Source: Octopus sinensis
Lineage: Eukaryota
Direction: 5' to 3'
DNA length: 64,000 nt
NCBI RefSeq assembly: GCF_006345805.1
Contig: NC_043026.1
Coordinates: 8,866,001-8,930,000 of the forward strand
Part shown: piece by piece, positions 25,182-64,000 of the stretch
How positions within the stretch are numbered: the stretch's first letter is position 1
How the letters are laid out: each line of letters opens with the position of its first letter
Translations under genes and position numbers: made by a program
The notes under the pieces: generated by a model
The model's input: the letters and a program-made list of their open reading frames with translations, nothing else
What the model was told of the DNA's origin: nothing
Database searches by the model: none

Positions 25182-25216
<35 letters not shown>

Positions 25217-25275
25217 GGTATGTAGAAAAATACAACATGGACAAGAACGTATAACTCATAGAAGACGATACAATA

Positions 25276-25326
<51 letters not shown>

Positions 25327-26084: not shown

Positions 26085-26492
26085 TATGAATGTTGTGCAG
26101 TAAGAATGTGTAACTGGAATTTAGAAATATGTTAACTTCACACAAGATTTTCTGATGTAAATTTTAATAAATTAAAAAAGTTCTGTTGTTCAGGTAAATG
26201 TTTATTTCTAGAGTTTATCTTTATGGAAACGTTGAATCTGTATTTTTTTCAGTAGCCTCTATATCTTACACTGTTGTTTCTTTATTATTTCAGAATATCA
26301 GATGACATTGGCATAACTGAAGATACATTCTCATTATTTATCATCTTTTAAAGACCAAAATGAAAATATTGTACAGAACAGATATATAAGATTGTTTCTA
26401 CAAATCTGTGGTGGAATTCCTCTGATATATTTACTCTGAAATGTGTTATTAGCAAATCTTCTGGACATCACTGGCTGGAGTGTCTACAAGAT

Positions 26493-28139: not shown

Positions 28140-29867
28140 TATTTGTGCTAAATCATAATCTGTAAGGGGTGACTGAACCCTTTACCATGCAGATTATTGT
28201 GTCGAATGTGAGGGTTATTTATTCACATTATTTTCAATTTGTCATGCATTAACCCACAGCTTTCAAATTTTGATGATATGATTGTGTATTTTCACAATGA
28301 CATTGTAGGGTAGGTGTAAGAAGCCGACTCTGACTAGTTTGATCATAAAATAGGCAGAATATTTGGGCCAGATATGGCTGGTTTAAATTCTAAAGAGTGG
28401 ACAGTAGATGTACCAACACTTCTTACTTCTCACAAGGACCATAAGGAGCCATTATTGACTGCCATTGAAAATATTTCATCATCATCATTTAACGTCCGTT
28501 TTCCATGCTAGCATGGGTTGGACGGTTCAACTGGGGTCTGGGAAGCCCGAAGGCTGCACCAGGTTGTCTGATCTGGCAGTGTTTCTACAGCTGGATGCCC
28601 TTCCTAATGCCAACCACTCCATGAGTGTAGTGGGTGCTTTTTACGTGCCACCTGCACAGGTGCCAGACGAGGCTGGCAAACGGCCACGATCGGATATTTT
28701 AAATACAGTCCTGCCCTGTCTCACTGTAGCATTGCTCTCCGCTAGTCCTGACCTGTATGTTCCACCCCCATTCCCTGTCTTACTGTATTATTGCTACTGG
28801 CTTGCCCTCAACCTATGTCTTCCACCCACATGTAACAAGAAAACTTTTTACACACCCTGCCCCCAACAAACCAATCTACATCTCTTTTTCACATTCCTTC
28901 CATACACTATGCCTACCTCTCACTCCCCCAATCCTGTCCTCATGGTGCTGTTCCTCTGTATCATTGCTATCCGGTAGCCCCCTGACCCTATATAATACCC
29001 AGGTTGTCATCACTCAACACACCCTACACTCTAATCATGCTTCCTTTGCAGTATCCTATTCCTTTACTCCCCACAAGGGGCTAAACACAGAGGGGACAAA
29101 CGGATTAAGTCGATTACATCGACCCCAGTGCATAACTGGTACTTATTTAATGGACCTCGGCGGAATTTGAACTCAGAGCCCAACGGCAGGCGAAATACCG
29201 CCTTTGCAGTATCCTGTCCCTTATATTATGACGTTTAAACCCCAAGGTTGTGCCCTGGCACTTGCCACCATCTATATCTCTTTCTTCCTTTACTCAAGGA
29301 TCCCCATTTATGTTCTGATCCCCTCCCTAGTGAATACGCCCATCATTTAGCCACTATATCCATCGTGTTGTCTCCCACCCTCTATCACCTTCTCCTGCTT
29401 TTCCCTCGGGCTGGGTAACCATGTATCTCCTTTGTGGCGGCACACCCGTTTCTGTCTTCATCCTGATCTCTCTCTCTGGCCTGGTAAACTTGTACTTCCT
29501 CTACAGCAACGGACAGATCTCAACAACAGATGCTGCCCAACAAACAGAACCAAGCCATGAAGATGCTACAGAATTTCAACTGTGATACAACTCCCACTGT
29601 TCCAGATAGAGTTTGTTAAAACTTGCCAAACCTGTTACTTCACAATTTGTAAGAAATTTGCCATGTATTTTTATAAAGAGTTGTAATAAATAATAGTTGC
29701 CTTCAATTTACCTGGTTCTTCTTGTCATTCTTTTATATAAAGGTAACTCCAGGCACACAAACTAGACCAGCCACAGTTAACTCGCCAGCAAAACTCATAA
29801 CCAATGCTACAGAATTTCAACTGTGATACAACTTCCACTATTCCAGATCGAGTTTGTTAAAATTTCT

Positions 29868-32677: not shown

Positions 32678-35308
32678 TATTTTTCCTTCAACTTCACAAT
32701 ATACCTTCTTTTTTTATTCTTTTTGCTTCTATAGTCTTTTGTTTACAAATATTTCAACTGTTGTATTTCTGGCCACTGTTACCTTTGTCACAAAACAACT
32801 AAATTTATCCACATTCAATCTGCAAACAGGCTCATCTTGTAGACACTCCAGCCAGTGATGTCCAGAAGGTTTGCTAATAACACATTTCAGAGTAAATATA
32901 TCAGAGGAATTCCACCACAGATTTATAGAAACAATCTTATATATCTGTTCTGTACAATATTTCCATTTTGGTCTTTAAAAAGCTGATAAATAATGAGAAT
33001 GTATCTTCAGTTATGCCAATGTCATCTGATATTCTGAAATAATAAAGAAACAACAGTGTAAGATATGGAGGCTACTTAAAAAAATACAGATTCAACATTT
33101 CCATAAAGATAAACTCTAGAAATAAACATTTAACTGAACAACAGAACTTTCTAATTTATTAATATTTACATCACAAAATCCTGTTTGAAGCTAAAATATT
33201 TCTAAACTCCAGCTCCACATTCATAAAAACACACACATACACTTTTTTACTGGTTTCAGTTGTTTTGACTGTGGTCATGCTGGAGCACCAACTTTAAAGG
33301 CTTCAGTCAATAGAATCAATGCTAGGACTTATTTTTTGAGCTTAGCACTTATTCTATCAGCCACTTTTGCCAAACCACAGGTTTATGGGGACATAAACAC
33401 ACCAACACTGTTTGTCAAGTGTTGAAGGGGTGGGAGGACAACACACCCACATATATATTGGGCTTCCTTCAGTTTCCATCTCCCAAATCCATTCACAAGG
33501 CCAGAGGATATTGTAGAAAATGTATGTCTGTGACTAGTTACCTAACAGCTCACAATTTCTTCTCTTTAATTCCATAAAGGGAAAAAATTACTGGAAATAG
33601 TCATTACTCATTTTGCCCCATGAGGAGATTCCACGAATGATTACAAAAAGTTTATCAGCCAAGCAAATGGCCTTCCCTGAATGCATTGAAAACATTATAA
33701 CAGAATCACTTTCAGGAAATTATCATTGTTCTCTTTGAGTGTGTAGAAAGAGAAATTTGGCAGAGGCAAGAAAAGGTGAAATTGTCTCTTCAAATTATCC
33801 AGAATTACATTTGAAAACAAAGACTCAAACATCAATATCTATCCTTCGACATCTTAAAGATCAGAAATGCAAAAAGCTATTTAAGTATCGAATTCAAATG
33901 AAAGAGAATCAGAGAAAAATTGCAAATGATGTGAAATTAATGAATATCGAATAAATGGGGGGAAAAAATCAACATAAAATATCATCAACAGTTTCTTCAA
34001 GATCTCTTCGTGGTTAGGGCAGCGGACTCGCGGTCGTAGGATTGCGGTTTCGATTCCCAGACCGGGCGTTGTGAGTGTTTATTGAGCGAAAACACCAAAA
34101 AGCTCCACGAGGCCCCGGCAGGGGATGGTGGTGATCCCTGCTGTACTCTTTCACCACAACTTTCTCTCACTCTTACTTCCTGTTTCTGTTGTACCTGTAT
34201 TTCAAAGGGCCGGCCTTGTCACTCTGTGTCACGCTGAATGTCCCCGAGAACTACGTTAAGGGTACACGTGTTTGTGGAGTGCTCATCGTCGTAACCGACG
34301 GAGTGCTTCCATCCACTAACAAGAGATTATTGAAAGTAGTCATTACTCATTTTGCCCCATCTTAGTCATAATTTTTGATAATTGAAAATTACCAAATTAG
34401 ACACTAAACGGGGGTTAAAAATTGATCTGGAATCTAAGAGAGAGAAGAATATTGATGGTTAAACACCGAACATCATCCAGATAATTTATTAGTAACCTCG
34501 ATTATTATCGGATTGAGAGTTGAGGGAAAATTTCTTGATATTAAAAAGGACCTGCAACTCCAACAACTATAAGGACAAATTCCCAGTCCTAAATATATAT
34601 TTCTTTACTCACCACAAGGGGCTAGACACTGAGGGGACAAACAAGGCCAGAAAAACGGATTAAGTCGATTATATCGACCCCGAAAGGATGAAAGGCAAAG
34701 TCGACCCCGGCGGAATTTGAACTCAGAACGTAACGGCAGACGAAATATCTATTTTTTTACTGCCCACAAGGGGCTAAACACAGAGGGAAGAAACAAGGAC
34801 AGACATAGGTATTAAGTCGATTACATCGACCCCAGTGCGTAACTGGTACTTTATTTATCGACCCCGCCGGAATTTAAACTCAGAACGTAACGGCAGACGA
34901 AATACGTCCACGCATTTCGCCCGGGGTGTTAACCCTTCTGCCAGCTCGCCGCCATCCCCAGTCCTAAAATATAATGTAGCAATACTCACAAAAATCATAA
35001 ATCCAAACAAATTAGGAGAAACGGGAAAATACTCATTTTGCCCCGCTTACTAATTATGTCCCTTACCTTATATCAAGAAACAAGGGTTCGATAAATTATA
35101 ATAAAGCATTGGATTCTCAGCATTTCTGTGGTTGGAGTTTATTTTAAGAACATTTCTCCACCTAAAACACACAACAAACAAACTTAAAGAAGAAACGATG
35201 GAGCGTGTAGGAGGCTGCCGCCATAGCTAGAAATAGCAGCCAAATGTGGAACAAAATCTGATTCACAAAGTATTAAAAGATTAAATGCTTTCGTTGTTTA
35301 ATACTTAC

Positions 35309-35841: not shown

Positions 35842-37034
35842 AAATATCTTACAAATATCTTACAAATATCTTACAAACTATAGAATTTTCTCAATAAAGC
35901 CAAGAGGAAAAGATGTTTTATGTAACACATTCTACCAGTATACGAAGTTTAAAATTTTTTAGTTACCTAGAAATTATGTTAAAAACTGCCGTTCAAACAG
36001 AAAAGATCCCCAATCTTTTTCTTAAACGAGGGACATATTCATACGGCACAGAATGTTTTTTTTACCTCAATAGACGTGAGTGATTGGTTGAAATTGCCGA
36101 AATGCTTGAAATTAAAGACGAAATATCTTACAAACTACACAATTTTCTCAATAAAGCCAAGAGGAAAAGATGTTTTATGTAACACATTCTACCAGTATAC
36201 GAAGTTTAAAACTTTTTAGTTACCTAGAAATTATGTTAAAAACTGCCGTTCAAACAGAAAAGATCCCCAATCTGTTTCTTAAACAAGGGACATATTCATA
36301 CGGCACAGAATGTTTTTTTACCTCAATAGACGTGAGTGATTGGTTGAAATTGCCGAAATGCTTGAAATTAAAGACGAAATATCTTACAAACTACACAATT
36401 TTCTCAATAAAGCCAAGAGGAAAAGATGTTTTATGTAACACATTCTACCAGTATACGAAGTTTAAAACTTTTTAGTTACCTAGAAATTATGTTAAAAACT
36501 GCCGTTCAAACAGAAAAGATCCCCAATCTGTTTCTTAAACAAGGGACATATTCATACGGCACAGAATGTTTTTTTACCTCAATAGACGTGAGTGATTGGT
36601 TGAAATTGCCGAAATGCTTGAAATTAAAGACGAAATATCTTACAAACTACACAATTTTCTCAATAAAGCCAAGAGGAAAAGATGTTTTATGTAACACATT
36701 CTACCAGTATACGAAGTTTAAAACTTTTTAGTTACCTAGAAATTATGTTAAAAACTGCCGTTCAAACAGAAAAGATCCCCAATCTGTTTCTTAAACAAGG
36801 GACATATTCATACGGCACAGAATGTTTTTTTACCTCAATAGACGTGAGTGATTGGTTGAAATTGCCGAAATGCTTGAAATTAAAGACGAAATATCTTACA
36901 AACTACACAATTTTCTCAATAAAGCCAAGAGGAAAAGATGTTTTATGTAACACATTCTACCAGTATACGAAGTTTAAAACTTTTTAGTTACCTAGAAATT
37001 ATGATAAAAACTGCCGTTCAAACAGAAAAGATCC
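35842..37034. repeat. 256-bp VNTR, 4 full monomers plus partial (unit 4)
   Basis: Anchors 35913, 36170, 36426, 36682, 36938. Confidence 0.98.
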
Positions 37035-38719: not shown

Positions 38720-39251
38720 TATGAATGTTGTGCAGTAGGAATGTGTAACTGGAATTTAGAAATATGTTAACTTCACACAAGATTTTCTGATGTAAATTTT
38801 AATAAATTAAAAAAGTTCTGTTGTTCAGGGAAATGTTTATTTCTAGAGTTTATCTTTATGGAAACGTTGAATCTGTATTTTTTTCAGTAGCCTCTATATC
38901 TTACACTGTTGTTTCTTTATTATTTCAGAATATCAGATGACATTGGCATAACTGAAGATACATTCTCATTATTTATCATCTTTTAAAGACCAAAATGAAA
39001 ATATTGTACAGAACAGATATATAAGATTGTTTCTACAAATCTGTGGTGGAATTCCTCTGATATATTTACTCTGAAATGTGTTATTAGCAAATCTTCTGGA
39101 CATCACTGGCTGGAGTGTCTACAAGATGTGTCTCTTTGCAAATTAAACTTGGGTAAATTTACTAACGAGTTTTGGGACAAAGGTAACAGTGGACAGAAAT
39201 ACAGCAGTCGAAATACTTGCAAACAAAAGACTATAGAAGTACAAAGAAGAA

Positions 39252-39299
<48 letters not shown>

Positions 39300-40790: not shown

Positions 40791-43700
40791 TATTTGTGCT
40801 AAATCATAATCTGTAAGGGGTGACTGAACCCTTTACCATGCAGATTATTCTGTCGAATGTGAGGGTTATTTATTCACATAATTTTCAATTTGTCCTGCAT
40901 TAACCCACAGCTTTCAAATTTTGATGATATGATTGTGTATTTTCACAATGACATTGTAGGGTAGGTGTAAGAAGCCGACTCTGACTAGTTTGATCATAAA
41001 ATAGGTAGAACATTTATGCCAGATATGGCTGGTTTAAATTCTAAAGAGTGGACAGTAGATGTACCAACACTTCTTACTTCTCACAAGGACCATAAGGGGC
41101 CATTATTGACTGCCATTGAAAATATTTCATCATCATCATTTAACGTCCGTTTTCCATGCTAGCATGGGTTGGACGGTTCAACTGGGGTCTGGGAAGCCCG
41201 AAGGCTGCACCAGGTTGTCTGATCTGGCAGTGTTTCTACAGCTGGATGCCCTTCCTAATGCCAACCACTCCATGAGTGTAGTGGGTGCTTTTTACGTGCC
41301 ACCTGCACAGGTGCCAGACGAGGCTGGCAAACGGCCACGATCGGATATTTTAAATACAGTCCTGCCCTGTCTCACTGTAGCATTGCTCTCCGCTAGTCCT
41401 GACCTGTATGTTCCACCCCCATTCCCTGTCTTACTGTATTATTGCTACTGGCTTGCCCTCAACCTATGTCTTCCACCCACATGTAACAAGAAAACTTTTT
41501 ACACACCCTACCCCCAACAAACCAATCTACATCTCTTCTTCACATTCCTTCCATACACTATGCCTACCTCTCACTCCCCCAATCCTGTCCTCATGGTGCT
41601 GTTCCTCTGTATCATTGCTATCCGGTAGCACCCTGACCCTATATAATACCCAGGTTGTCATCACTCAACACACCCTACACTCTAATCATGCTTCCTTTGC
41701 AGTATCCTATTCCTTTACTCCCCACAAGGGGCTAAACACAGAGGGGACAAACGGATTAAGTCGATTACATCGACCCCAGTGCATAACTGGTACTTATTTA
41801 ATGGACCTCGGCGGAATTTGAACTCAGAGCCCAACGGCAGGCGAAATACCGCCTTTGCAGTATCCTGTCCCTTATATTATGACGTTTAAACCCCAAGGTT
41901 GTGCCCTGGCACTTGCCACCATCTATATCTCTTTCTTCCTTTACTCAAGGATCCCCATTTATGTTCTGATCCCCTCCCTAGTGAATACGCCCATCATTTA
42001 GCCACTATATCCATCGTGTTGTCTCCCACCCTCTATCACCTTCTCCTGCTTTTCCCTCGGGCTGGGTAACCATGTATCTCCTTTGTGGCGGCACACCCGT
42101 TTCTGTCTTCATCCTGATCTCTCTCTCTGGCCTGGTAAACTTGTACTTCCTCTACAGCAACGGACAGATCTCAACAACAGATGCTGCCCAACAAACAGAA
42201 CCAAGCCATGAAGATGCTACAGAATTTCAACTGTGATACAACTCCCACTGTTCCAGATAGAGTTTGTTAAAACTTGCCAAACCTGTTACTTCACAATTTG
42301 TAAGAAATTTGCCATGTATTTTTATAAAGAGTTGTAATAAATAATAGTTGCCTTCAATTTACCTGGTTCTTCTTGTCATTCTTTTATATAAAGGTAACTC
42401 CAGGCACACAAACTAGACCAGCCACAGTTAACTCGCCAGCAAAACTCATAACCAATGCTACAGAATTTCAACTGTGATACAACTTCCACTATTCCAGATC
42501 GAGTTTGTTAAAATTTCTGACGGTTCAACTGGGGTCTGGGAAACCAGAAGGCTGCACTAGGCCCAGTCTGATCTGACAAAGTTTCTACAGCTGGATGCCC
42601 TTCCTAATGCCAACCACTCCGTTAGTGTAGTGGTTGCTTTCACGTGCCACTGGCACGGAGGCCAAACGATGCTGGCAACAGCTACAATCGGATGGTGCTT
42701 TTTACGTGCAACCTGCACGGAGGACAGACGGGCTGCGCTGGCAGCGGCCACGTTCAGATGGTTCCTTTGTGTGTGTATATGTATATATACTACTCGTAGT
42801 AATACCTGTCATTAATTGGGTAATTGCTTTTATTCTTTCTTGAGAGCCCCATTCAAAGTATTATTATATGTATAGTTTACCCCTCCTGTATGTGTGTATT
42901 TTATAAGAGAAAAATGAAATAACTGAAGTAGGAAAAAGACCAGTTTCATACACAGGCTTCTGTTTTATTTATCAAAACACTAATGGCAATTATATACTCC
43001 TTACTCTTTTACTTGTTTCAGTCATTGACTTTGAGTAAGTCCTCAACACCACCGTCTTCCTTTCAAGCTCTTTTAACCATTTTTTGGGAGCTGTCAAGTC
43101 CCACACAAGAAATTCCTTTGCCATTTCAACACAAAGTTCAATTACAGTTCAAAATGTAAGAAAATAAAACAAGACACAAAAAAAGAAGGGAAGAAATAAA
43201 ATAAAAAATAACAGTTCAAAAAAGAGTTCTTTTATTTTTTTAAATAAACGAAAGCTTTGAAGAAGAGAGTTCAAATCCAGGCAAAGAAATAAATTAATTT
43301 TCGGCCGAAAAGGTACTCCTGGCCAAATGTACATAGGTTCCTTGGTATGAATCGTCTTTACCCGTAATTGGTAAAAGAAATCCAAACACAATACTGGCTA
43401 CAGCCAACGGTAACTGTACCAGGTTCTAATCATTCGGGCGAGGATACGTCCCTCCACTGCTTTTTTTTTTTTTTAATGAATCCAAAATATTCCCACTAAA
43501 TTCACAAAACAGCAGCAGGCGAAATTTGTTAACAAAAAATAACAATATAACAAATTACACCCAGCTCAGATAAAACAAAATCACTGGCCTCGACAACCTT
43601 CTCTGTTTTTGTTCTTTTTTCTTGTAATTGTCCAGAGCCAAAACACTCACGTCCACCTTGCAAAAACAGTCCTTCCTGCCTTGTACTCCTTGGTAATCCA

Positions 43701-45329: not shown

Positions 45330-47971
45330 TATTTTTCCTTCAACTTCACAATATACCTTCTTTTTTTATTCTTTTTGCTTCTATAGTCTTTTGTTTACAA
45401 ATATTTCAACTGTTGTATTTCTGGCCACTGTTACCTTTGTCACAAAACAACTAAATTTATCCACATTCAATCTGCAAACAGGCTCATCTTGTAGACACTC
45501 CAGCCAGTGATGTCCAGAAGGTTTGCTAATAACACATTTCAGAGTAAATATATCAGAGGAATTCCACCACAGATTTATAGAAACAATCTTATATATCTGT
45601 TCTGTACAATATTTCCATTTTGGTCTTTAAAAAGCTGATAAATAATGAGAATGTATCTTCAGTTATGCCAATGTCATCTGATATTCTGAAATAATAAAGA
45701 AACAACAGTGTAAGATATGGAGGCTACTTAAAAAAATACAGATTCAACATTTCCATAAAGATAAACTCTAGAAATAAACATTTAACTGAACAACAGAACT
45801 TTCTAATTTATTAATATTTACATCACAAAATCCTGTTTGAAGCTAAAATATTTCTAAACTCCAGCTCCACATTCATAAATACACACACATACACTTTTTT
45901 ACTGGTTTCAGTTGTTTTGACTGTGGTCATGCTGGAGCACCAACTTTAAAGGCTTCAGTCAATAGAATCAATGCTAGGACTTATTTTTTGAGCTTAGCAC
46001 TTATTCTATCAGCCACTTTTGCCAAACCACAGGTTTATGGGGACATAAACACACCAACACTGTTTGTCAAGTGTTGAAGGGGTGGGAGGACAACACACCC
46101 ACATATATATTGGGCTTCCTTCAGTTTCCATCTCCCAAATCCATTCACAAGGCCAGAGGATATTGTAGAAAATGTATGTCTGTGACTAGTTACCTAACAG
46201 CTCACAATTTCTTCTCTTTAATTCCATAAAGGGAAAAAATTACTGGAAATAGTCATTACTCATTTTGCCCCATGAGGAGATTCCACGAATGATTACAAAA
46301 AGTTTATCAGCCAAGCAAATGGCCTTCCCTGAATGCATTGAAAACATTATAACAGAATCACTCTTTCAGGAAATTATCATTGTTCTCTTTGAGTGTGTAG
46401 AAAGAGAAATTTGGCAGAGGCAAGAAAAGGTGAAATTGTCTCTTCAAATTATCCAGAATTACATTTGAAAACAAAGACTCAAACATCAATATCTATCCTT
46501 CGACATCTTAAAGATCAGAAATGCAAAAAGCTATTTAAGTATCGAATTCAAATGAAAGAGAATCAGAGAAAAATTGCAAATGATGTGAAATTAATGAATA
46601 TCGAATAAATGGGGGGAAAAAATCAACATAAAATATCATCAACAGTTTCTTCAAGATCTCTTCGTGGTTAGGGCAGCGGACTCGCGGTCGTAGGATTGCG
46701 GTTTCGATTCCCAGACCGGGCGTTGTGAGTGTTTATTGAGCGAAAACACCAAAAAGCTCCACGAGGCCCCGGCAGGGGATGGTGGTGATCCCTGCTGTAC
46801 TCTTTCACCACAACTTTCTCTCACTCTTACTTCCTGTTTCTGTTGTACCTGTATTTCAAAGGGCCGGCCTTGTCACTCTGTGTCACGCTGAATGTCCCCG
46901 AGAACTACGTTAAGGGTACACGTGTTTGTGGAGTGCTCATCGTCGTAACCGACGGAGTGCTTCCATCCACTAACAAGAGATTATTGAAAGTAGTCATTAC
47001 TCATTTTGCCCCATCTTAGTCATAATTTTTGATAATTGAAAATTACCAAATTAGACACTAAACGGGGGTTAAAAATTGATCTGGAATCTAAGAGAGAGAA
47101 GAATATTGATGGTTAAACACCGAACATCATCCAGATAATTTATTAGTAACCTCGATTATTATCGGATTGAGAGTTGAGGGAAAATTTCTTGATATTAAAA
47201 AGGACCTGCAACTCCAACAACTATAAGGACAAATTCCCAGTCCTAAATATATATTTCTTTACTCACCACAAGGGGCTAGACACTGAGGGGACAAACAAGG
47301 CCAGAAAAACGGATTAAGTCGATTATATCGACCCCGAAAGGATGAAAGGCAAAGTCGACCCCGGCGGAATTTGAACTCAGAACGTAACGGCAGACGAAAT
47401 ATCTATTTTTTTACTGCCCACAAGGGGCTAAACACAGAGGGAGAAACAAGGACAGACATAGGTATTAAGTCGATGACATCGACCCCAGTGCGTAACTGGT
47501 ACTTTATTTATCGACCCCGCCGGAATTTAAACTCAGAACGTAACGGCAGACGAAATACGTCCACGCATTTCGCCCGGGGTGTTAACCCTTCTGCCAGCTC
47601 GCCGCCATCACCAGTCCTAAAATATAATGTAGCAATACTCACAAAAATCATAAATCCAAACAAATTAGGAGAAACGGGAAAATACTCATTTTGCCCCGCT
47701 TACTAATTATGTCCCTTACCTTATATCAAGAAACAAGGGTTCGATAAATTATGATAAAGCATTGGATTCTCAGCATTTCTGTGGTTGGAGTTTATTTTAA
47801 GAACATTTCTCCACCTAAAACACACAACAAACAAACTTAAAGAAGAAACGATGGAGCGTGTAGGAGGCTGCCGCCATAGCTAGAAATAGCAGCGAAATGT
47901 GGAACAGATCAAAGGACATCTGAGACACCAAAGTATTAAAAGATTAAATGTTTTCGTTGTTTAATACTTAC

Positions 47972-48499: not shown

Positions 48500-49424
48500 A
48501 AATATCTTACAAATATCTTACAAACTACAGAATTTTCTCAATAAAGCCAAAAGGAAAAGGTGTTTTATGTAACACATTCTACCAGTATACGAAGTTTAAA
48601 ATTTTTTAGTTACCTAGAAATTATGTTAAAAACTGCCGTTCAAACAGAAAAGATCCCCAATCTTTTTCTTAAACGAGGGACATATTCATACGGCACAGAA
48701 TGTTTTTTTACCTCAATAGACGTGAGTGATTGGTTGAAATTGCCGAAATGCTTGAAATTAAAGACGAAATATCTTACAAACTACAGAATTTTCTCAATAA
48801 AGCCAAGAGGAAAAGATGTTTTATGTAACACATTCTACCAGTATACGAAGTTTAAAACTTTTTAGTTACCTAGAAATTATGTTAAAAACTGCCGTTCAAA
48901 CAGAAAAGATCCCCAATCTGTTTCTTAAACAAGGGACATATTCATACGGCACAGAATGTTTTTTTACCTCAATAGACGTGAGTGATTGGTTGAAATTGCC
49001 GAAATGCTTGAAATTAAAGACGAAATATCTTACAAACTACAGAATTTTCTCAATAAAGCCAAAAGGAAAAGGTGTTTTATGTAACACATTCTACCAGTAT
49101 ACGAAGTTTAAAATTTTTTAGTTACCTAGAAATTATGTTAAAAACTGCCGTTCAAACAGAAAAGATCCCCAATCTTTTTCTTAAACGAGGGACATATTCA
49201 TACGGCACAGAATGTTTTTTTACCTCAATAGACGTGAGTGATTGGTTGAAATTGCCGAAATGCTTGAAATTAAAGACGAAATATCTTACAAACTACAGAA
49301 TTTTCTCAATGAAGCCAACAAGAAAAGATGTTTTATGTAACACATTCTACCAGTATACGAAGTTTAAAACTTTTTAGTTACCTAGAAATTATGTTAAAAA
49401 CTGCCGTTCAAACAGAAAAGATCC
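48500..49424. repeat. 256-bp VNTR, 3 full monomers plus partial (unit 5)
   Basis: Anchors 48560, 48816, 49072, 49328. Confidence 0.98.
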
Positions 49425-51118: not shown

Positions 51119-51713
51119 TATGAATGTTGTGCAGTAAGAATGTGTAACTGGAATTTAGAAATATGTTAACTTCACACAAGATTTTCTGATGTAAATTTTA
51201 ATAAATTAAAAAGTTCTGTTGTTCAGTTAAATGTTTGTTTCTAGAGTTTATCTTTATGGAAATGTTGAATCTGTATTTTTTTAAGTAGCCTCTATATCTT
51301 ACACTGTTGTTTCTTTATTATTTCAGAATATCAGATGACATTGGCATAACTGAAGATACATTCTCATTATTTATCATCTTTTAAAGACCAAAATGAAAAT
51401 ATTGTACAGAACAGATATATAAGATTGTTTCTACAAATCTGTGGTGGAATTCCTCTGAAATGTGTTATTAGCAAATCTTCTGGACATCACTGGCTGGAGT
51501 GTCTACAAGATGTGTCTCTTTGCAAATTAAACTTGGGTAAATTTACTAACGAGTTTTGGGACAAAGGTAACAGTGGACAGAAATACAGCAGTCGAAATAC
51601 TTGCAAACAAAAGACTATAGAAGTACAAAGAAGAAAACATATATATATATATATATATATATTGTGAGAAACTAAAGGATCTGACTTTTCCAGAAGAAAA
51701 AGGGAAACAAAAA

Positions 51714-52904: not shown

Positions 52905-55630
52905 TATTTGTGCTAAATCATAATCTGTAAGGGGTGACTGAACCCTTTACTATGCAGATTATTCTGTCGAATGTGAGGGTTATTTATTCCCATTATTTTC
53001 AATTTGTCCTGCATTAACCCACAGCTTTCAAATTTTGATGATATGATTGTGTATTTTCACAATGACATTGTAGGGTAGGTGTAAGAAGCCGACTCTGACT
53101 AGTTTGATCATAAAATAGGTAGAATATTTGGGCCAGATATGGCTGGTTTAAGTTCTAAAGAGTGGACACTAGATGCACCAAGTTGTCTGATCTGGCAGTG
53201 TTTCTACAGCTGGATGCCCTTCCTAATGCCAACCTGTCTGTGAGTGTAGTGGGTGCTTTTTACGTGCCACCTGCACAGGTGCCAGACGAGGCTGGCAAAC
53301 GGCCACGATCGGATATTTTAAATACAGTCCTGCCCTGTCTCACTGTAGCATTGCTCTCCGCTAGTCCTGACCTGTATGTTCGACCCCCATTCCCTGTCTT
53401 ACTGTATTATTGCTACTGGCTTGCCCTCAACCTATGTCTTCCACCCACATGTAACAAGAAAACTTTTTACACACCCTGCCCCCAACAAACCAATCTACAT
53501 CTCTTTTTCACATTCCTTCCATACACTATGCCTACCTCTCACTCCCCCAATCCTGTCCTCATGGTGCTGTTCATCTGTATCATTGCTATCCGGTAGCCCC
53601 CTGACCCTATATAATACCCAGGTTGTCATCACTCAACACCCCCTACACTCTAATCATGCTTCCTTTGCAGTATCCTATTCCTTTACTACCCACAAGGGGC
53701 TACACACAGAGAGGAGACAAACAAGGACAGATAAAGGGATTAAGTTGATTACATCGACCCCAGTGCGTAACTGGTACTTATTTAATCGACCCCGAAAGGA
53801 TGAAAAGCAAAGTCGACCTCGGCGGAATTTGAACACAGAGCCTAACTTTTCTGCCAGCTCGCCACCTATGCAGTATCCTGTCCCTTATATTATGACGTTT
53901 GAACATCAAGGGTATGCCCTGGCACTTGCCACCATCTATATCTCCCTCTTCCTTTACTCAACCATCCTCATCTATGCTCTAATCCCCTCCCTAGTGAATA
54001 CGCCCATCATTTTGCCACAATGTCCATCGTGTTGTCTCCCACCCTTATCTCCGCCTGCATTTCCCTCAGGCTGGGTAACCATGTATCTCCTTTGTGGCGG
54101 CACACCCTTTCCTGATCTCTCTCTCTCTCTCTCTGGCCTGGTAAACTTGTACTTCCTCTACAGCAACAGACAGATCACAACAAAAGATGCTGCCCAACAC
54201 ACAAAACCAAGCCATGAACATGCTACAGAATTTCAACTGTGATACAACTTCCACTGTTCCAGATAGAGTTACTTAAAACTTGCCAAACCTGTTACTTCAC
54301 AATTTGTAAGACATTTATATACTCTTTACTCTTTTACTTGTTTCAGTCATTGACTTTGAGTAAGTCCTCAACACCACCGTCTTCCTTTCAAGCTCTTTTA
54401 ACCATTTTTTGGGAGCTGTCAAGTCCCACACAAGAAATTCCTTTGCCATTTCAACACAAAGTTCAATTACAGTTCAAAATGTAAGAAAATAAAACAAGAC
54501 ACAAAAAAAGAAGGGCAGAAATAAAATAAAAAATAACAGTTCAAAAAAGAGTTCTTTTATTCTTTTAAATAAACGAAAGCTTTGAAGAAGAGAGTTCAAA
54601 TCCAGGCAAAGAAATAAATTAATTTTCGGCCGTAAAGGTACTCCTGGCCAAATGTACATAGGTTCCTTGGTATGAATCATTTTTACCTGTAATTGGTAAA
54701 AGAAATCCAAACAAAATACTGGCTACAGCCAACGGTAACTGTAACAGGTTCTAATCATTAGGGCGAGGATACGTCCCTCCACTGTTTTTGTTTTTTTTAT
54801 GAATCCAAAATATTCCCACTAAATTCACAAAACAGCAGCCGCCGAGAGCAGGCGAAATTTGTTAACAAAAAAGAACAATATAACAAATTACACCCAGCTC
54901 AGATAAAACAAAATCACTGGCCTCGACAACCTTCTCTGTTTTTGTTCTTTTTTCTTGTAATTGGCCAGAGCCAAAACACTCACGTCCACCTTGCAAAAAC
55001 AGTCCTTCCTGCCTTGGTAATCCACAGACACGAAGATAATTTTTGCGGAGGGGCTACGCCTACTCGAAAACACAATTCTCACTGCAAAGTGAGTCTTTAT
55101 AGGCGGCCACAGGCAGGCAAATGTCTGGAGCAGATTGGAGTCTATTACTCACCAAAAAATATTAAATACAGGGCAACAAACTCCACTAAGCCCTCAAAAA
55201 ATACGACAAACGCCTACCTGTAGTCGAGCCTCAAAGTTCAAAATTTCACGACGAAAGACGTGACATCAAGCAGCAAGAACTCTCCGCCAAAAACAAACAC
55301 GTCCGTCTCCGACAAAGGTAAGCAAGCTACTTACCACACAACTACTCCTGTTTACTCAATTTGAAAACTCTTCGTATTGTCTTTTGTCTCCTGTGTCTGT
55401 GTGTGTGCGCCTAAGTTCATATATGAGTAGTGTCCCTTTAATATCACGCAAAAATTGATAAAAATTTGAGAATTAAAATTAAATATCTTTTTTCTAATTG
55501 ATAGAATTTTACTAAACCTTTGGATGGCAAATTGAAAATAATGTGAATATATAAACATCACATTCGACAGAATAACGTGCATGGTAAAGGGTTTCAGTAA
55601 CCCCTTAGAGATTATGATTTAGTTTAAATA

Positions 55631-56635
55631 TTAGTGGGATTGCTTCTTCCCCTTATGAACACATTTGTGAGAAGTTAAGCTGCTATGTTGAGTAAATAAC
55701 CTTCCACAGATATCACAAGAATATGGTGTCTCTCCTGTATGAATACGTTTATGGGTCATTAGGTTACTACTGGTAGAGAAAGATTTATTACAGACATCAC
55801 AAGAATATGGTGTCTCTCCTGTATGAATACGTTTATGTTTATCTAAGTTGCCACTTTGAGAGAATGATTTACCACAGATTTCACAGTGAAATAGTGTCTC
55901 TCCTGTATGAATACGTTTGTGTAAAGTCAAATAAATATTTTGAGAGAATAATTTACCACAGATATCACAAGAATATGGTGTTTCTCCTGTATGAATACGT
56001 CTGTGTCCAGTTAAGTTAGAACTCACGGTGAATGATTTACCACAGATATCACAAGGATATGGTGACTCTCCTGTATGAATACGTTTATGATAAGTTAGAG
56101 CACTTTTACCAGGAAATAATTTACCACAGATATTACAGGAATATGGCTTCTTCCCTGTATGAATACGCTTGTGATTAGTTAAAGCACTTCTTTGAGAGAA
56201 TGATTTACCACAGATGTCACATTGAAATGGCTTCTCTCCTGTATGACAATGCTGGTGATTACTTAAAACACTTTGGTCAGAGAATCTTGTACCACAGACA
56301 CTACAATGATATGGTGACTCTCCTGTATGAATACGTTTATGTTGAGTTAGAGCACTTTTATCAGAAAATGATTTACCACAGATATTACAGGAATATGGCT
56401 TCTCTCCTGTATGAATACGTTTATGTTTAGCTAAGTTGCCACTTTGAGAGAATGATTTACCACAGATTTCACAGTGAAATGGCTTCTCTCCTGTATGAAT
56501 ACGTTTGTGACTATTTAAGTTACATTTACTTGAGAAAGACTTTTTACACACATCACAGTCATGTGACAATTTTTGTCTCTCCTTTTTGCTATCTTCTGGA
56601 AAAATATGTTCCTTCACTTTCTCACTCTTTTCCAT
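55631..56635 (-). CDS. C2H2 ZNF B5, 334 aa, 11 fingers; type I body with altered N-terminus (EHIFPEDSKK)
   Basis: ATG ORF; differs from B1 in the N-terminal segment and finger 2 (CEIC). Confidence 0.95.
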   Translation of the reverse strand: MEKSEKVKEHIFPEDSKKERQKLSHDCDVCKKSFSSKCNLNSHKRIHTGEKPFHCEICGKSFSQSGNLAKHKRIHTGEKPYSCNICGKSFSDKSALTQHKRIHTGESPYHCSVCGTRFSDQSVLSNHQHCHTGEKPFQCDICGKSFSQRSALTNHKRIHTGKKPYSCNICGKLFPGKSALTYHKRIHTGESPYPCDICGKSFTVSSNLTGHRRIHTGETPYSCDICGKLFSQNIYLTLHKRIHTGETLFHCEICGKSFSQSGNLDKHKRIHTGETPYSCDVCNKSFSTSSNLMTHKRIHTGETPYSCDICGRLFTQHSSLTSHKCVHKGKKQSH

Positions 56636-59113
56636 TATTTTTCCTTCAACTTCACAATATACCTTCTTTTTTTATTCTTTTTGCTTCTGTAGTCTTTTGT
56701 TTACAAATATTTCAACTGTTGTATTTCTGGCCACTGTTACCTTTGTCACAAAACAACTAAATTTATCCACGTTCAATCTGCAAACAGGCTCATCTTGTAG
56801 ACACTCCAGCCAATGATGTCCAGAAGGTTTGCTAATAACACATTTCAGAGTAAATATATCAGAGGAATTCCACCACAGATTTATAGAAACAATCTTATAT
56901 ATCTGTTCAGTAAAATATTTTCATTCTGGTCTTTAAAAAGCTGATAAATAATGAGAATGTATCTTCAGTTATGCCAATGTCATCTGATATTCTGAAATAA
57001 TAAAGAAACAACAGTGTAAGATATAGAGGCTACTTAAAAAAATACAGATTCAACATTTCCATGAAGATAAACTTTAGAAATAAACATTTAACTGAACAAC
57101 AGAACTTTCTAATTTATTAATATTTATATCAGCTTAGCACTTATTCTATCAGCCACTTTTGCCAAACCACAGGTTTATGGGGACATAAACACACCAACAC
57201 TGTTTGTCAAGTGTTGAAGGGGTGGGAGGACAACACCCACACCCACACATATATATATATTGGGCTTCCTTCAGTTTCCATCTCCCAAATCCATTCACAA
57301 AGCCAGAGGATATTGTAGAAAATGCATGTCTGTGACTAGTTACCTAACAGCTCACAATTTCTTCTCTTTAACTCCATATAGGGAAAAAATTATTGGAAAT
57401 AGTCATTACTCACTTTGCCCCATGAGGAGATTTCACGAATGATTACAAAAAGTTTATCAGCCAAGCAAATGGCCTTCCCTGAATGCATTGAAAACATTAT
57501 AACAGAATCACTATTTCAGGAAATTATCATTGTTCTCTTTGAGTGTGTAGAAAGAGAAATTTGGCAGAGGCAAGAAAAGGTGAAATTGTCTCTTCAAATT
57601 ATCCAGAATTACATTTGAAAACAAAGACTCAAACACATCAATATCTATCCTTCGACATCTTAAAGATCAGAAATGCAAAAAGCTATTCAAGTATCGAATT
57701 CAAATGAAAGAGAATCAGAGAAAAATTGCAAATGATGTGAAATTAATGAATATCGAATAAATGGGGGGAAAAAAATCAATATAAAATATCATCAACAGTT
57801 TCTTCAAGATCTCTTCGTGGTTAGGGCAGCGGACACGCGGTCGTAGAATTGCGGTTTCGATTCCCAGACCGGGCGTTGTGAGTGTTTATTGAGCGAAAAC
57901 ACCTAAAAGCTCCACGAGGCCCCGGCAGGGGATGGTGGTGATCCCTGCTGTACTCTTTCACCACAACTTTCTCTCACTCTTACTTCCTGTTTCTGTTGTA
58001 CCTGTATTTCAAAGGGCCGGCCTTGTCACTCTGTGTCACGCTGAATGTCCCCGAGAACTACGTTAAGGGTACACGTGTTTGTGGAGTGCTCATCGTCGTA
58101 ACCGACGGAGTGCTTCCATCCACTAACAAGAGATTATTGAAAGTAGTCATTACTCATTTTGCCCCATCTTAGTCATGATTTTTGATAATTGAAAATTACC
58201 AAATTAGACACTAAACGGGGGGTAAAAATTGATCTGGAATCTAAGAGAGAGAAGAATATTGATGGTTAAACACCGAACATCATCCAGATAATTTATTAGT
58301 AACCTCGATTATTATCGGATTGAGAGTTGAGGGAAAATTTCTTGATAATAAAAAGGACCTGCAACTCCAACAACTATAAGGACAAATTCCCAGTCCTAAA
58401 TATATATTTATTTACTCACCACAAGGGGCTAGACACTGAGGGGACAAACAAGGCCAGAAAAACGGATTAAGTCGATTATATCGACCCCGAAAGGATGAAA
58501 GGCAAAGTCGACCCCGGCGGAATTTGAACTCAGAACGTAACGACAGACGAAATATCTATTTTTTTACTGCCCACAAGGGGCTAAACACAGAGGGAAGAAA
58601 CAAGGACAGACATAGGTATTAAGTCGATTACATCGACCCCAGTGCGTAACTGGTACTTTATTTATCGACCCCGCCGGAATTTAAACTCAGAACGTAACGG
58701 CAGACGAAATACGTCCACGCATTTCGCCCGGGGTGTTAACCCTTCTGCCAGCTCGCCGCCATCCCCAGTCCTAAAATATAATGTAGCAATACTCACAAAA
58801 ATCATAAATCCAAACAAATTAGGAGAAACGGGAAAATACTCATTTTGCCCCGCTTACTAATTATGTCCCTTACCTTATATCAAGAAACAAGGGTTCGATA
58901 AATTATAATAAAGCATTGGATTCTCAGCATTTCTGTGGTTGGAGTTTATTTTAAGAACATTTCTCCACCTAAAACACACAACAAACAAACTTAAAGAAGA
59001 AACGATGGAGCGTGTAGGAGGTTGCCGCCATAGCTAGAAATAGCAGCCAAATGTGGAACATCTGAGACACCAAAGTATTAAAAGATTAAATGCTTTCGTT
59101 GTTTAATACTTAC

Positions 59114-59646: not shown

Positions 59647-60304
59647 AAATATCTTACAAACTACAGAATTTTCTCAATAAAGCCAACAGGAAAAGATGTT
59701 TTATGTAACACATTCTACCAGTATACGAAGTTTAAAACTTTTTAGTTACCTAGAAATTATGTTAAAAACTGCCGTTCAAACAGAAAAGATCCCCAATCTG
59801 TTTCTTAAACAAGGGACATATTCATACGGCACAGAATGTTTTTTTACCTCAATAGACGTGAGTGATTGGTTGAGATTGCCGAAATGCTTGAAATTAAAGA
59901 CGAAATATCTTACAAACTACACAATTTTCTCAATGAAGCCAAGAGGAAAAGATGTTTTATGTAACACATTCTACCAGTATACGAAGTTTAAAACTTTTTA
60001 GTTACCTAGAAATTATGTTAAAACTGCCGTTCAAACAGAAAAGATCCCCAATCTGTTTCTTAAACAAGGGACATATTCATACGGCACAGAATGTTTTTTT
60101 TACCTCAATAGACGTGAGTGATTGGTTGAGATTGCCGAAATGCTTGAAATTAAAGACGAAATATCTTACAAACTACACAATTTTCTCAATGAAGCCAAGA
60201 GGAAAAGATGTTTTATGTAACACATTCTACCAGTATACGAAGTTTAAAACTTTTTAGTTACCTAGAAATTATGTTAAAAACTGCCGTTCAAACAGAAAAG
60301 ATCC
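59647..60304. repeat. 256-bp VNTR, 2 full monomers plus partial (unit 6)
   Basis: Anchors 59696, 59952, 60208. Confidence 0.98.
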
Positions 60305-60471
60305 ATAAACTTTGCCTTTCACTTTTTTCTGCTGGGGTTCAATAAAATAAATACCAGTTGACTACTCGGGTCCATGAAATCGACTGACACTTGACCCTCC
60401 CCGAAATTTCTGGTTTTCTACCAAAATCTTTAAAAAACAAAAGAAAAAAAGAAGAAAAACCAGTATTTCAT

Positions 60472-60632
60472 ACGCATGCGCACTAAGCGTATTTCCGCCT
60501 CCATTCATTCATTTTAACAAACTTGATTTAAGTCGGAATTTCTCTCAATTCACTCCCAAACACATTTATAATACATTTCTCAACCACCTGACGCACTTCT
60601 AACAACAACACCATCCTTTTTAAACCATTTCC
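60472..60632 (+). promoter_or_regulatory. A-type promoter motif and exon 1, now upstream of gene C
   Basis: Motif at 60472, donor at 60633. The next matching acceptor is at 62881-62882. Confidence 0.55.
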
Positions 60633-61196
60633 GTAAGTATTAAACTATTTAATTTCTAAATACTTCGTGTCTCAGATGTCCTTTGATTCGTGCGACCTTT
60701 GGCTGCTATTTCTAGCTATGGAGGCTACCTTCTACACTTTCCATCATTTTCCCACGTTTCTTGTGTTTTCACTGTGGATAAATGCCAGAAACGGCCTCAG
60801 ACTCACCGATATTTTAAATCGTAAACAGAAGCAACCAGGGGCGAAGAATAGGGTTGAAAAAAGATCATAAATGTGTTTATGAAGAGAAAAACTTCAAAAG
60901 ATGGGAAAGTGAAACGAGGAGGGTTGTCTTAGGATGTGCTAGAAACAACAGCCAAATCTCCCTTAAATCACACTTTTTCCTTTGAAAATATTTACAATAT
61001 TTTATGTTTTTGTTACCGAAAAGGTTTTTCCCATCGTTTTTAAGGGCAAAAATATGTTTGTTTGTTTTTTTTTTTTCAAGTGAAAAATGAAGAGGCTGGT
61101 GGTAAATGAAATTTTGAGAATGCGATTTTTCAAAAAACTTTTTTCAGAATCGGATCCTCCAGAACCAAAAAGTGGGATTCCGTAAAAAAAAAACAG

Positions 61197-61243
<47 letters not shown>

Positions 61244-61247
<4 letters not shown>

Positions 61248-62550
61248 ATGTTACATTACTCGGTAGTCAAGATAAAACTCTGAGTTTCAGATGCCGAAGT
61301 GGAAATCCACAACACCATCTCTTCGGTTATCTGGCTATTTGAAAACGTTATGAAAAAATACCGTTAAAAATGAAGGGAAATTACTCTGTTATAACTCTGC
61401 TTTGCTTGCGTACTTATACATCGCTCGCATTTTTCGTCATAAAAATTATAAAAATACATAAAAATATATAAAATTATATAAAAATATATAAATTCTTCTT
61501 GGGACATAACACAGAAAGCATGTTCTATCCGTTTTCTTTAGGGGACCAAAAACGTAACAGAAATTTAGTCACATGTGGGCATGATCCGAAAAGCTCTGTC
61601 CTTGTATTTAGACATGTGGTAGGGTCTAAGCTGCTTTTCCAGATAAGCCATCTCTCCATGTCGCATAAACCGCACCTTCCGCTGCCGTTAGTATAGGGCT
61701 TACATCTGGCCAAAATCTTCCATTGTATGTTATAATCGACACCTTTATCTCTTAAAGACCAAATATGATTGGATAATTGTGTCGCTTTTCTTTGTTCCAG
61801 TGCCTAAAGCTCAAAGTGTGGTTATTGAACCTGGCTTTGAAATTACCCTCTGTAAGCCCACGTATTTCTTCGTCGAAACGGTGTCTTTAGTGGTTATAGA
61901 GTTTACGGTAGCTTCATATATGATGGTCTTGGACATACAAGCTCCATTTAGCGGGCACAATTCTTTATTCCTGCATGAACAGCTGTTTTCTTCTCGTGGT
62001 TTTTGTATGTTATGATTGATTATGTTTTTAAAATTGGTAGTTGAACTAAAACTAATTTTTAAATTGTGTCTATTGAAGAGTTTCCTATAAGCATGGTTAA
62101 CTGGAAAATGTCTATCTATCAGTGCTAGGAAATATTTACCTATATTGAAGGCCACCTCGGGTGAGTAAGGGGGCGTAAACCAGATGACCTTCCTATTTCT
62201 ATTATTCCTTTTCCTTACTGTTGGGCTAGTGATAGGTGTATATTTTATTTTTTCGCTAAAACCACTATCTTTTAAAGCTTTATTATAAACTGGGGCAACG
62301 CTATTGAAGATGTCCTCATTAGATGAGAGGCTAGAAATCCTCTTACTAATATTTTTAACTAAATTTTTGAATACTATAGGGGGATGGCATGAACCTACAT
62401 TAATATAACTTAGTCTATCATTGGGCTTCCTATAAGGCTTATAAATATTATTATTAAGATCTAAGGAAACGTCTAAGAAATTGACAACCGTCAGGTTAGT
62501 GTCTATAGTTATACTAAGTCCGAAGTGTTTCATTAACTGGATAATATCTA
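61244..62550 (-). mobile_element. 5'-truncated Penelope-like retroelement (RT C-terminus plus GIY-YIG endonuclease, two frameshifts) ending in (TA)n
   Basis: ORF 61811-62533: VNFLDVSL, SCHPP, IWFTPPYS, CSCx5CPLNGAC, IIYEATV...KKYVG. After two inferred 1-nt deletions the frame continues TEGNFKARFNNH...QLSNHIW...WKIL...RCGLCDME...LNTRTEL...CPH to 61525. From memory this Cys pattern and TA targeting fit the Hydra clade of PLEs (unverified). Confidence 0.9.
61264..61337 (-). ncRNA. Type I hammerhead-ribozyme-like motif in the PLE 3' end
   Basis: Minus strand: agataa-CCGAAGA-gatg...catc-t-GAAA-ctcagag-UU-ttatct. Stems I, II and III all pair by hand. Two deviations from the canonical core. Confidence 0.55.
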
Positions 62551-63237
62551 TGGCTGATAGAATAAGTGCTAAGCTGAAAAAATAAATCCTAGCATTGATT
62601 CTATTGACTGAAGCCTTTAAAGCTGGTGCTCCAGCATGACCACAGTCAAAACAACTAAAACCAGTAAAAAAGTGTGTGTGTGTGTGTATTTATGAATGTG
62701 GAGCTGGAGTTTAGAAATATGTTAGCTTCAAACAGGATTTTGTGATGTAAATATTAATAAATTAGAAAGTTCTGTTGTTCAGTTAAATGTTTATTTCTAG
62801 AGTTTATCTTTATGGAAATGTTGAATCTGTATTTTTTTAAGTAGCCTCCATATCTTACACTGTTGTTTCTTTATTATTTCAGAATATCAGATGACATTGG
62901 CATAACCAAAGATACATTCTCATTATTTATCATCTTTTAAAGACCAGAATGAAAATATTTTACTGAACAGATATATAAGATTGTTTCTATGAATCTGTGG
63001 TGGAATTCCTCTGATATATTTACTCTGAATTGTGTTATTAGCAAACCTTCTGGACATCACTGGTTGGAGTGTCTACACGATGAGTCTGTTTGCAGATTGA
63101 ACGTGGATAAATTTAGTTGTTTTGTGACAAAGGTAACAGTGGCCAGAAATATAACAGTTAAAATATTTGTAAACAAAAGACTATAGAAGCAAAAAGAATA
63201 AAAAAAGAAGGTATATTGTGAAGTTGAAGGAAAAATA

Positions 63238-64000
63238 ATGGAAAAGAGTGAGAAAGTGAAGGAACATATTTTTCCAGAAGTTAGCAAAAAAGAGAGACAA
63301 AAATTGTTACATGACTGTGATGTGTGTAAAAAGTCTTTCTCACAAAAAGGTACCTTAAATAGTCACAAACGTATTCATACAGGAGAGACACCGTATTATT
63401 GTGATATCTGTGGTAAATCATTCTCTCAAAGTAGCAACTTAACTGCTCACAAACGTTCCCATACAGGAGAGAAGCCATTTCACTGTGAAATCTGTGGTAA
63501 ATCATTCTCTCAAAAACAGAACTTGACTACACATAAACGTATTCATACAGGAGAGAAGCCATATCATTGTAGTGTCTGTGGTACAATATTCTCTCACCAA
63601 AGTGTTTTAAATAATCACCAGCATTGTCATACAGGAGAGAAGCCATATTCCTGTAATATCTGTGGTAAAATATTTCCTGGTAAAAGTGCTCTAACTAATC
63701 ACAAACGTATTCATACAGGAGAGTCCCCATATCATTGTGATATCTGTGGTAAATCATTCTCTCAAAGTTGCAACTTAACTACTCACAAACGTTCCCATAC
63801 AGGAGAGAAGCCATACCACTGTGATATCTGTGGTAAATCATTCTCTCAAAAAATTACCTTGACTACCCACAAATGTATTCATACAGGAGAGAAGCCATAT
63901 CATTGTAGTGTCTGTGGTACGAGTTTCTCTCACCAAAGTGTTTTAAATTATCACCAGCATTGTCATACAGGAGAGAAGCCATATTCCTGTAATATCTGTG
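63238..64000 (+). CDS. C2H2 ZNF gene C (B-type N-terminus, new finger set), at least 9 fingers, runs off the window
   Basis: Manual translation from ATG 63238: [60 protein letters not shown]..., no stop to 64000. Not in the ORF track, presumably because it has no stop inside the window. Confidence 0.93.

Follow-up and report, generated by a model that had tools for sequence, protein, structure and literature searches.

A predicted chimeric zinc-finger gene of Octopus sinensis whose A-type and B-type parts meet at a truncated Penelope-like element

We analyzed a 64,000-nt stretch of the Octopus sinensis genome, hereafter the window, in which position p corresponds to position p + 8,866,000 of CM016888.1. 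It belongs to the chromosome-scale genome GCA_006345805.1 (PMC10700109). The window carries an array of C2H2 zinc-finger genes of two types, five A genes on the plus strand (A1–A5) and five B genes on the minus strand (B1–B5), and at its right-hand end a further, partial gene, C. Judged from its sequence, C appears to be a genuine chimeric C2H2 zinc-finger gene, in which an A-type promoter and exon 1 have been placed in front of a B-type coding exon. Between the two parts, inside the predicted intron, lies an insert whose motifs identify it as a 5′-truncated Penelope-like element (PLE) of the Hydra clade. On balance, we cautiously favor a single, PLE-bridged rearrangement as the origin of C.

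Trees and alignments of the two halves of the gene gave discordant results. The 5′ part of C differs by about 2% from A and by about 29% from B, and the A-type and B-type 5′ blocks are only about 71% identical to each other. The 3′ part lies 3.2–4.6% from B, where B copies differ among themselves by 0–2.5%, and about 11% from A; in the alignments it is 96.4% identical to B-type and 85% to A-type sequence. The discordance between the 5′ and 3′ trees argues that C is a true chimera of the A and B lineages.

On the left side of the insert, self-BLAST of the window matched 60001–61250 to all five A copies on the plus strand at 97.4–97.9% identity, and 60300–61255 is 96.9% identical to A4. Divergence among the A copies themselves is 0.1–2.2%, against 1.8–2.5% for the left flank of C, and the private differences of this flank are on a par with those of A3. 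The conserved exon-1 block starts around 60460 with the palindrome ACGCATGCGCA (60472–60482), which every A and B copy has unchanged at the corresponding position and which we take to resemble an NRF1/ewg-type promoter motif. The donor end of the block, CATTTCC/GTAAGTATTAAAC, is likewise invariant (11 of 11 copies). A-type similarity then runs to an intronic (TA)n tract at 61199–61243, which comprises 22.5 units in C and 14–43 units at the homologous site in A1–A5. Past this tract, all five A copies continue with TAAAATACAAAATGGG, and the 3′ part of the A-type intron reads TAAAATACAAAATGGGAC... Many unit-to-unit alignments break at the tract, so we regard it as an unstable site. In A3 (25185–25321), about 65 bp following the tract are locally duplicated, with (TA)n runs of 14 and 21 units flanking the diverged extra copy.

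On the right side, the junction reads ...ATAATATCTA/TGGCTGATAG (...ATCTA/TGGCTGATAG) at 62550/62551, with an uncertainty of 2 nt. From 62551 to 64000, C matches B3 (33363–31915) and B4 (46015–44567) on the minus strand at 88.9% overall. This figure understates the kinship of C and B, because 62551–63300, which lies outside the finger repeats, is 96.4% identical to B3, an array-grade similarity. The A bodies match only from 62691, at 80.5–81.9%, and B1, B2, and B5 align only from 62743, owing to a shared 157-bp deletion. The corresponding intron segment of about 157 bp is kept in B3 (33174–33329), B4 (45826–45981), and C (62585–62742); its loss from the other three is derived and divides the B genes into two sets. 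Upstream of TGGCTGATAG, all five B copies carry ...GGTTTGGCAAAAG, and no TA run adjoins it. As the A copies and the B copies each continue differently past their respective junctions, the two flanks are contiguous in neither lineage. A comparison of the 30-nt flanks found no common k-mer of 4 nt or longer, so there is no target-site duplication (TSD). A preliminary description of this DNA had proposed A-type sequence up to the (TA)n at 61243, inverted B-type sequence from 62551 with its ATG intact, and PLE flanks that come from different genes and show no TSD. Self-BLAST, the repeat coordinates, the position of the ATG (63238), the paralog continuations, and the k-mer comparison bear out all of this.

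The insert itself, taken as 61251–62550, found no second match anywhere in the window by self-BLAST, and no further copies or remnants of its PLE family were detected across the 64 kb. Its minus strand specifies the C-terminal portion of a protein to which 120 database relatives are 40–51% identical. With tblastn, the PLE coding remnant could be traced across three frames between 62548 and about 61540 without an in-frame stop, with frameshifts near 61856 and 61795, and the 5′ boundary of the insert is uncertain by 2 nt (62548–62550). An apparent extension of PLE similarity to the right of 62550, into the B introns, was rejected: it amounts to about 20% identity with stops and a long gap, and it has no independent match in a B copy.

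Hydra-clade PLEs, which carry a C-terminal endonuclease, are characterized by a CxCX5C linker, the absence of CCHH, and the presence of CxxC and CxH; their reverse transcriptases (RTs) have an N-terminal RWK and a DKT where others have DKG; and they are shorter than 3 kb, occur in molluscs, and nearly always sit in (TA)n (Craig et al. 2021, PMC8557442). In the insert, CGLC and CPH lie around the conserved E and N, and the stretch from IIYEA to KYVGL contains no Cys, so this GIY-YIG core lacks CCHH. The Pfam match to GIY-YIG has E = 0.004, which is under the cut-off. Pfam (including RVT_1) detected no RT domain in the insert or in its relatives, and a PDB sequence search returned zero matches. 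RWK and DKT lie upstream of the truncation point, so the insert cannot show either. Placement in the Hydra clade rests on motifs. The earlier proposal of a minus-strand PLE reaching 62550 thus stands, with the clade as a refinement.

The genomic context of relatives was examined at three loci, L003 (a contig of ENA ERZ25067561), L004, and L005. Full-length relatives at L003 carry ...IRWKAYF or ...LRWKAIF, and FADKTTNMY or FADKTSNMY, which are the RWK and DKT motifs, and the open reading frames (ORFs) of the relatives are about 2.2 kb long. L003:2343–7766 holds members of two distinct Hydra-clade PLE subfamilies, placed back to back. Of these, the second is a partial tandem, a 5′-truncated copy followed by a full-length one, bounded by (TA)5 and (TA)26 in the manner of a textbook PLE insertion unit. 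L004 and L005 are 5′-truncated copies. TA repeats are present on both sides in copy 2 of L003 and in L004, and on the 3′ side only in L005. PLE copies are normally 5′-truncated, and TSDs within microsatellites are not discernible (Craig et al. 2021, PMC8557442).

A scan for hammerhead ribozymes with Rfam 15 was negative for the region, for the 3′ untranslated region (UTR) of the insert, and for the loci of the three relatives (relatives at E up to 1). By pattern and pairing, complete minimal hammerheads were found in the 3′ UTR of all relatives examined, 35–38 nt before the flanking (TA)n (L003:5240–5277, L003:7640–7677, L004:5179–5213, and L005:4772–4802). Their order is helix I, CUGANGA, a hairpin, GAA, a 3-bp helix III, and the cleavage site. 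A covariance model built from the relatives only gave its top hit over the whole window, on both strands, at 61334–61268 (15.3 bits, E about 0.09). This putative hammerhead remnant has the core CCGAAGA (U4 changed to C) and an expanded helix II, and its helices I and III persist with changed base pairs. It ends about 25–30 nt before the (TA)n, and because this distance is conserved, the 3′ end of the PLE appears complete.

In gene C, a donor GT (60633–60634) and an acceptor AG (62881–62882) would delimit an intron of 2250 nt, near the length of the B intron (~2283 nt). The acceptor context, TTTCTTTATTATTTCAG/AATATC, is invariant across A, B, and C. As the preliminary description had it, donor, acceptor, and ATG all survive, at least at the level of sequence. 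Every Zn ligand in the open frame of C is intact. Fingers f1, f3, f4, and f5 of C best match f1, f2, f4, and f6 of B at 90–98%, and f6–f8 duplicate f2–f4, whereas B1–B5 are 98.6–99.5% identical to one another. Within C, four fingers are duplicated in tandem as a 336-bp unit (63356–63664 vs 63692–64000, 92.9% identical), which the B copies lack. Estimates of dN and dS come to about 0.064 and 0.079, with the replacements concentrated in the recognition helices of fingers 1 and 3. When the non-finger N-terminus of C was used in a homology search, zero candidates emerged, and a search with the finger region was swamped by generic zinc-finger matches and pointed to nothing more specific than octopus.

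The body of C is an outgroup to B1–B5: five sites unite B1–B5 against C, and C has 10 private derived sites. The earlier proposal that C joins an A-type promoter to a B-type body is therefore upheld by the discordant phylogenies, with the amendment that the body is not a simple copy of B and represents an older, B-like lineage. C and B5 exclusively share seven variants, four of them derived, and almost none are exclusive to C and another B copy. The shared variants fall in short patches of C (62947–63273) and B5 (56600–56930), which are head-to-head inverted repeats about 5.4 kb apart, and these patches suggest gene conversion between adjacent inverted repeats. An origin of C as a new copy of B5, inverted or folded back, was also considered; the sites uniting B1–B5, the private sites, and the restructured fingers rule it out. 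The head-to-head pairing of C with B5, likewise part of the preliminary description, holds (Table 1).

Table 1. Coordinates of gene C, the insert, and adjoining features (window positions)
Feature	Position	Strand	Basis or remark
Left flank, sixth array copy of the A-type 5′ region	60305..61198	+	1.8–2.5% from A1–A5
A-type conserved block, putative core promoter and non-coding exon 1 of C	60460..60632	+	Sharply bounded; common to A and B lineages
(TA)22 microsatellite, pre-existing PLE target	61199..61243	.	Same (TA)n in all five A copies, without PLE
5′-truncated Hydra-clade PLE by motifs, ~1.3 kb, antisense to gene C	61244..62550	-	Homologs, tblastn; unique in window
Degenerate minimal hammerhead-ribozyme remnant in PLE 3′ UTR (putative)	61268..61334	-	Relatives-only covariance model; pattern scan agrees
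PLE ORF remnant	61528..62548	-	tblastn and motifs
CxH, CPH	61570-61584	-	Part of PLE ORF remnant
CxxC, CGLC	61663-61674	-	Part of PLE ORF remnant
GIY-YIG core, IIYEA...KYVGL	61853-61924	-	IIYEA...KYVGLTEGNFKARFNNH aligns with GIY-YIG region of 120 homologs
CxCX5C linker, CSCRNKELC	61955-61981	-	Replaces CX2-5CxxC
RT C-terminus, thumb-like FLDV...KPYRKP	62381-62479	-	Part of PLE ORF remnant
B-type 3′ part of intron, inverted relative to B1–B5	62551..62882	+	95.9–100% to B3/B4 per 100-bp window; holds 140 bp kept by B3/B4 and missing from B1, B2, B5
Proposed chimeric intron, 2250 nt, GT...AG	60633..62882	+	A-type 5′ part, (TA)22, PLE, B-type 3′ part; predicted
Putative exon 2 5′ UTR, B-type	62883..63237	+	Alignment; 3.2–4.6% from B, about 11% from A
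C coding region, partial, at least 254 codons, 8 intact C2H2 fingers	63238..64000	+	ATG at 63238; runs off window
256-bp tandem repeats, 2.6 copies	59647..60304	.	Between divergent B5 and A-type/C promoters; TRF
B5 coding exon, 334 aa, 11 C2H2 fingers; head-to-head partner of C	55631..56635	-	ORF list, translation

The window has a GC content of about 35%, encodes C2H2 zinc-finger genes, and contains zero gaps. The array comprises five complete units of 10.7–12.7 kb and the start of a sixth. Within each unit, an A gene (plus strand) and a B gene (minus strand) stand tail to tail, and the B gene of each unit is head to head with the A gene of the next, with 256-bp tandem repeats between them. 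According to TRF, there is one such repeat block per divergent B/A promoter pair, with 1.6–7.6 copies depending on the unit (109–2045, 12127–13553, 23891–24292, 35864–37034, 48511–49424, and 59647–60304); the block could be a spacer or a regulatory array. A fairly GC-rich stretch separates the tails of the A and B genes and holds ORFs of 170–288 aa (5996–6766, 17583–18428, 53376–54242, 28465–28977, and 41116–41628), none of which has a Pfam match. Gene models on record for this chromosome are confined to B2 and B3, both single-exon, and a 267-aa model on A2, all of them within the window. Exact record look-up of the B3 protein returned CM016888.1, at a locus 100% identical to window 21673–42677, and that of the B5 protein and the PLE ORF gave nothing.

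In all five A genes, an (AT)n stretch takes the place of the sequence with which the B and C coding regions open, the ATG and first codons (…AATAATGGAAAAGAGTGAG…; ~3930–3990, 15500–15560, 26280–26330, and 51310–51360, with exact coordinates of 39239–39296 in A4). This (AT)n is variable in length, and the A genes are without an equivalent start codon. No in-frame ATG lies ahead of the A fingers, and the upstream frame is open in A2 and A3 and closed in A1, A4, and A5, according to repeat length. The A genes could be pseudogenes that lack a start, or their translation could begin elsewhere.

Taken as a whole, we think it somewhat probable that a single PLE-bridged rearrangement made gene C, and our confidence in the single-event step on its own is lower than in the PLE-bridged package. 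Under this model, a GIY-YIG nick in the (TA)n would prime reverse transcription of PLE RNA, and the incomplete cDNA would be ligated to another DNA end some distance away, within a B-like gene's intron, with the DNA between the two breakpoints being lost or inverted. The outcome would be a promoter swap in which an A-type promoter drives a B-type exon 2 that keeps its ATG, and the antisense PLE would be removed inside the 2250-nt GT–AG intron. Afterwards, C would have diversified its fingers and traded short conversion patches with its inverted neighbor B5. The topology could be that of a deletion toward a downstream, plus-strand B-like gene, of an inversion within a terminal unit, or of an older mirror-image array. 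The narrower proposal, that a start-codon-competent, promoter-swapped gene arose directly from one aberrant PLE retrotransposition (target-primed reverse transcription at the (TA)n of the intron, followed by capture of the cDNA end at a second break), we hold as tentative and on the doubtful side.

The model has a precedent in L1 elements, for which deletions, duplications, and fold-back inversions arise when the cDNA is joined to a distant second break, leaving a canonical 3′ junction, a 5′ end at the distant break, and no TSD (Rodriguez-Martin et al. 2020, PMC7058536). The L1 events and the insert in C are alike in having a 3′ junction at a preferred target, a truncated 5′ end on non-adjacent DNA, no TSD, and an element that bridges the breakpoints. 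They differ in that the insert is a GIY-YIG PLE, germline, and fixed in the assembly, whereas the L1 cases involve an APE-type long interspersed element (LINE) and are somatic. The mechanism is one that we infer for C by analogy with L1. L1 retrotransposition-mediated rearrangements were reportedly also described by Gilbert (2002) and Symer (2002). A route to C by way of a template switch from PLE to host RNA during reverse transcription was rejected; it would need an antisense, intron-containing transcript of the B-like gene.

Several points count against a single PLE-bridged origin of a working gene. Neither a pre-rearrangement allele nor the lost or inverted segment is among the sequences of the window. 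A one-sided (TA)n is by itself no proof of rearrangement, because one of the three relatives (L005) also lacks a 5′ (TA)n. The 2 nt (TA) at 62549–62550 are of ambiguous origin, which weighs on whether there is microhomology at the 5′ junction. The two frameshifts of the PLE and its mutated ribozyme core show that the event is not recent, and changes since then could have blurred the junctions. Exon 1, splicing, and expression of C are predictions from the DNA, and a dN/dS of about 0.7–0.8 on few sites is no proof that C functions.

The same final structure would be reached in two steps, by normal insertion of a PLE in the (TA)n of a sixth A gene (A6) and a later, unrelated deletion or inversion by end joining that cut the PLE and left it as a passive landmark. 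One breakpoint would then lie within the PLE and the other in the intron of the B-like gene, and what looks like 5′ truncation would be a rearrangement breakpoint. Over half of the intron consists of the PLE, and spliceable intron-to-intron joins would often fall inside it; moreover, the (TA)n region is visibly unstable, as the alignment breaks and the local duplication in A3 attest. This history requires two events where one suffices, however, and 5′ truncation is usual for PLE copies (L004 and L005 are also truncated); we consider it unlikely. An order of events in which the chimeric intron is the older feature, its A-type 5′ part and B-type 3′ part having been joined at the (TA)n, for example by breakage at this palindromic repeat, before a PLE inserted at the distal edge of the tract, gains some force from the target preference of Hydra-clade PLEs for (TA)n, where a TSD would not be discernible. 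The TA at 62549–62550 could then be the last repeat unit of the target, and L005 provides a case with (TA)n on the 3′ side only. Insertion would nevertheless have to strike a tract of 22 or more units precisely at its final one, copy 2 of L003 and L004 carry TA repeats on both sides, and none of the 10 other genes in the window has a PLE-free A/B chimeric intron, which leaves this order with a slim chance.

Loss of a TSD and flanks from two loci are also the classical signature of recombination between transposable elements. Non-allelic homologous recombination between same-orientation PLE copies in the (TA)n of A6 and in the intron of a B-like gene would delete the intervening DNA and leave one hybrid copy, consistent with the one copy in the window. 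Such a history needs two insertions of the same family within a short distance, the second of them at a site that is not (TA)n and that about 115 bp separate from the closest short TA run of the B-type introns, contrary to target preference, and other copies or remnants are absent from the 64 kb. In our estimate its probability is very low. Misassembly of the PLE join, or of the placement of C beside B5, we regard as very improbable, if a trace less so than recombination between PLEs. Units of about 12 kb at 96–99% identity are hard to assemble, and the window ends 1.4 kb past the junction; against this, the window is gapless, the PLE is unique and, at 1.3 kb, far below long-read length, and the junctions are base-precise, one of which would still be a non-canonical PLE junction. 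Furthermore, the seven variants exclusive to C and B5, four of them derived, are as expected of gene conversion between neighbors, which argues for a real B5–C adjacency and against misassembly. A scheme in which the A genes are themselves the chimeras, with a unit junction at the (TA)n, and C is ancestral is less parsimonious: it requires an extra event and leaves unexplained the discordance between B and C (29% in the 5′ part vs 3.5% in the 3′ part).

The C locus reveals no new kind of system; a mobile element at a gene-shuffling breakpoint is a known type of event, of which this is a clean example. The PLE clade and, for LINEs, the rearrangement signature are already known, and what is new is a base-resolved example and the possible extension to a GIY-YIG element. 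A member of the little-studied Hydra clade here marks both breakpoints of a shuffle that set a promoter and exon 1 onto the coding exon of a paralog, and a PLE-marked join of this sort would be one concrete route to new regulatory and coding combinations in the very large octopus C2H2 family. The signature of L1-type retrotransposition-mediated rearrangement may also apply to GIY-YIG retroelements. We know of no earlier germline example of PLE-bridged exon shuffling, and a single-event origin of C, if true, would be the first. If true, it would also suggest that (TA)n-seeking PLEs, together with scattered (TA)n tracts, help to remodel cephalopod zinc-finger clusters.

Compared with known systems, the insert resembles Hydra-clade PLEs in its C-terminal GIY-YIG domain, CxCX5C linker, lack of CCHH, CxxC and CxH motifs, 5′ truncation, (TA)n association, putative hammerhead remnant, and mollusc host. 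It differs from full elements of that clade in its missing RT core, two frameshifts, mutated ribozyme core, and (TA)n on one side only. Penelope elements are said to have been found by Evgen'ev and colleagues at inversion breakpoints in the Drosophila virilis group, and those cases share with C a PLE located exactly at a rearrangement breakpoint. In the D. virilis cases, ectopic recombination or dysgenesis is held responsible for large cytological inversions, whereas C is a kilobase-scale join that would have created a chimeric gene. Tandem expansions of C2H2 zinc-finger genes in octopus genomes were reportedly described by Albertin et al. in 2015. The array around C is like these expansions in its clustered recent duplicates, finger turnover, and recognition-helix changes, and C differs from them in the specific swap of promoter and exon 1 at the edge of the array.

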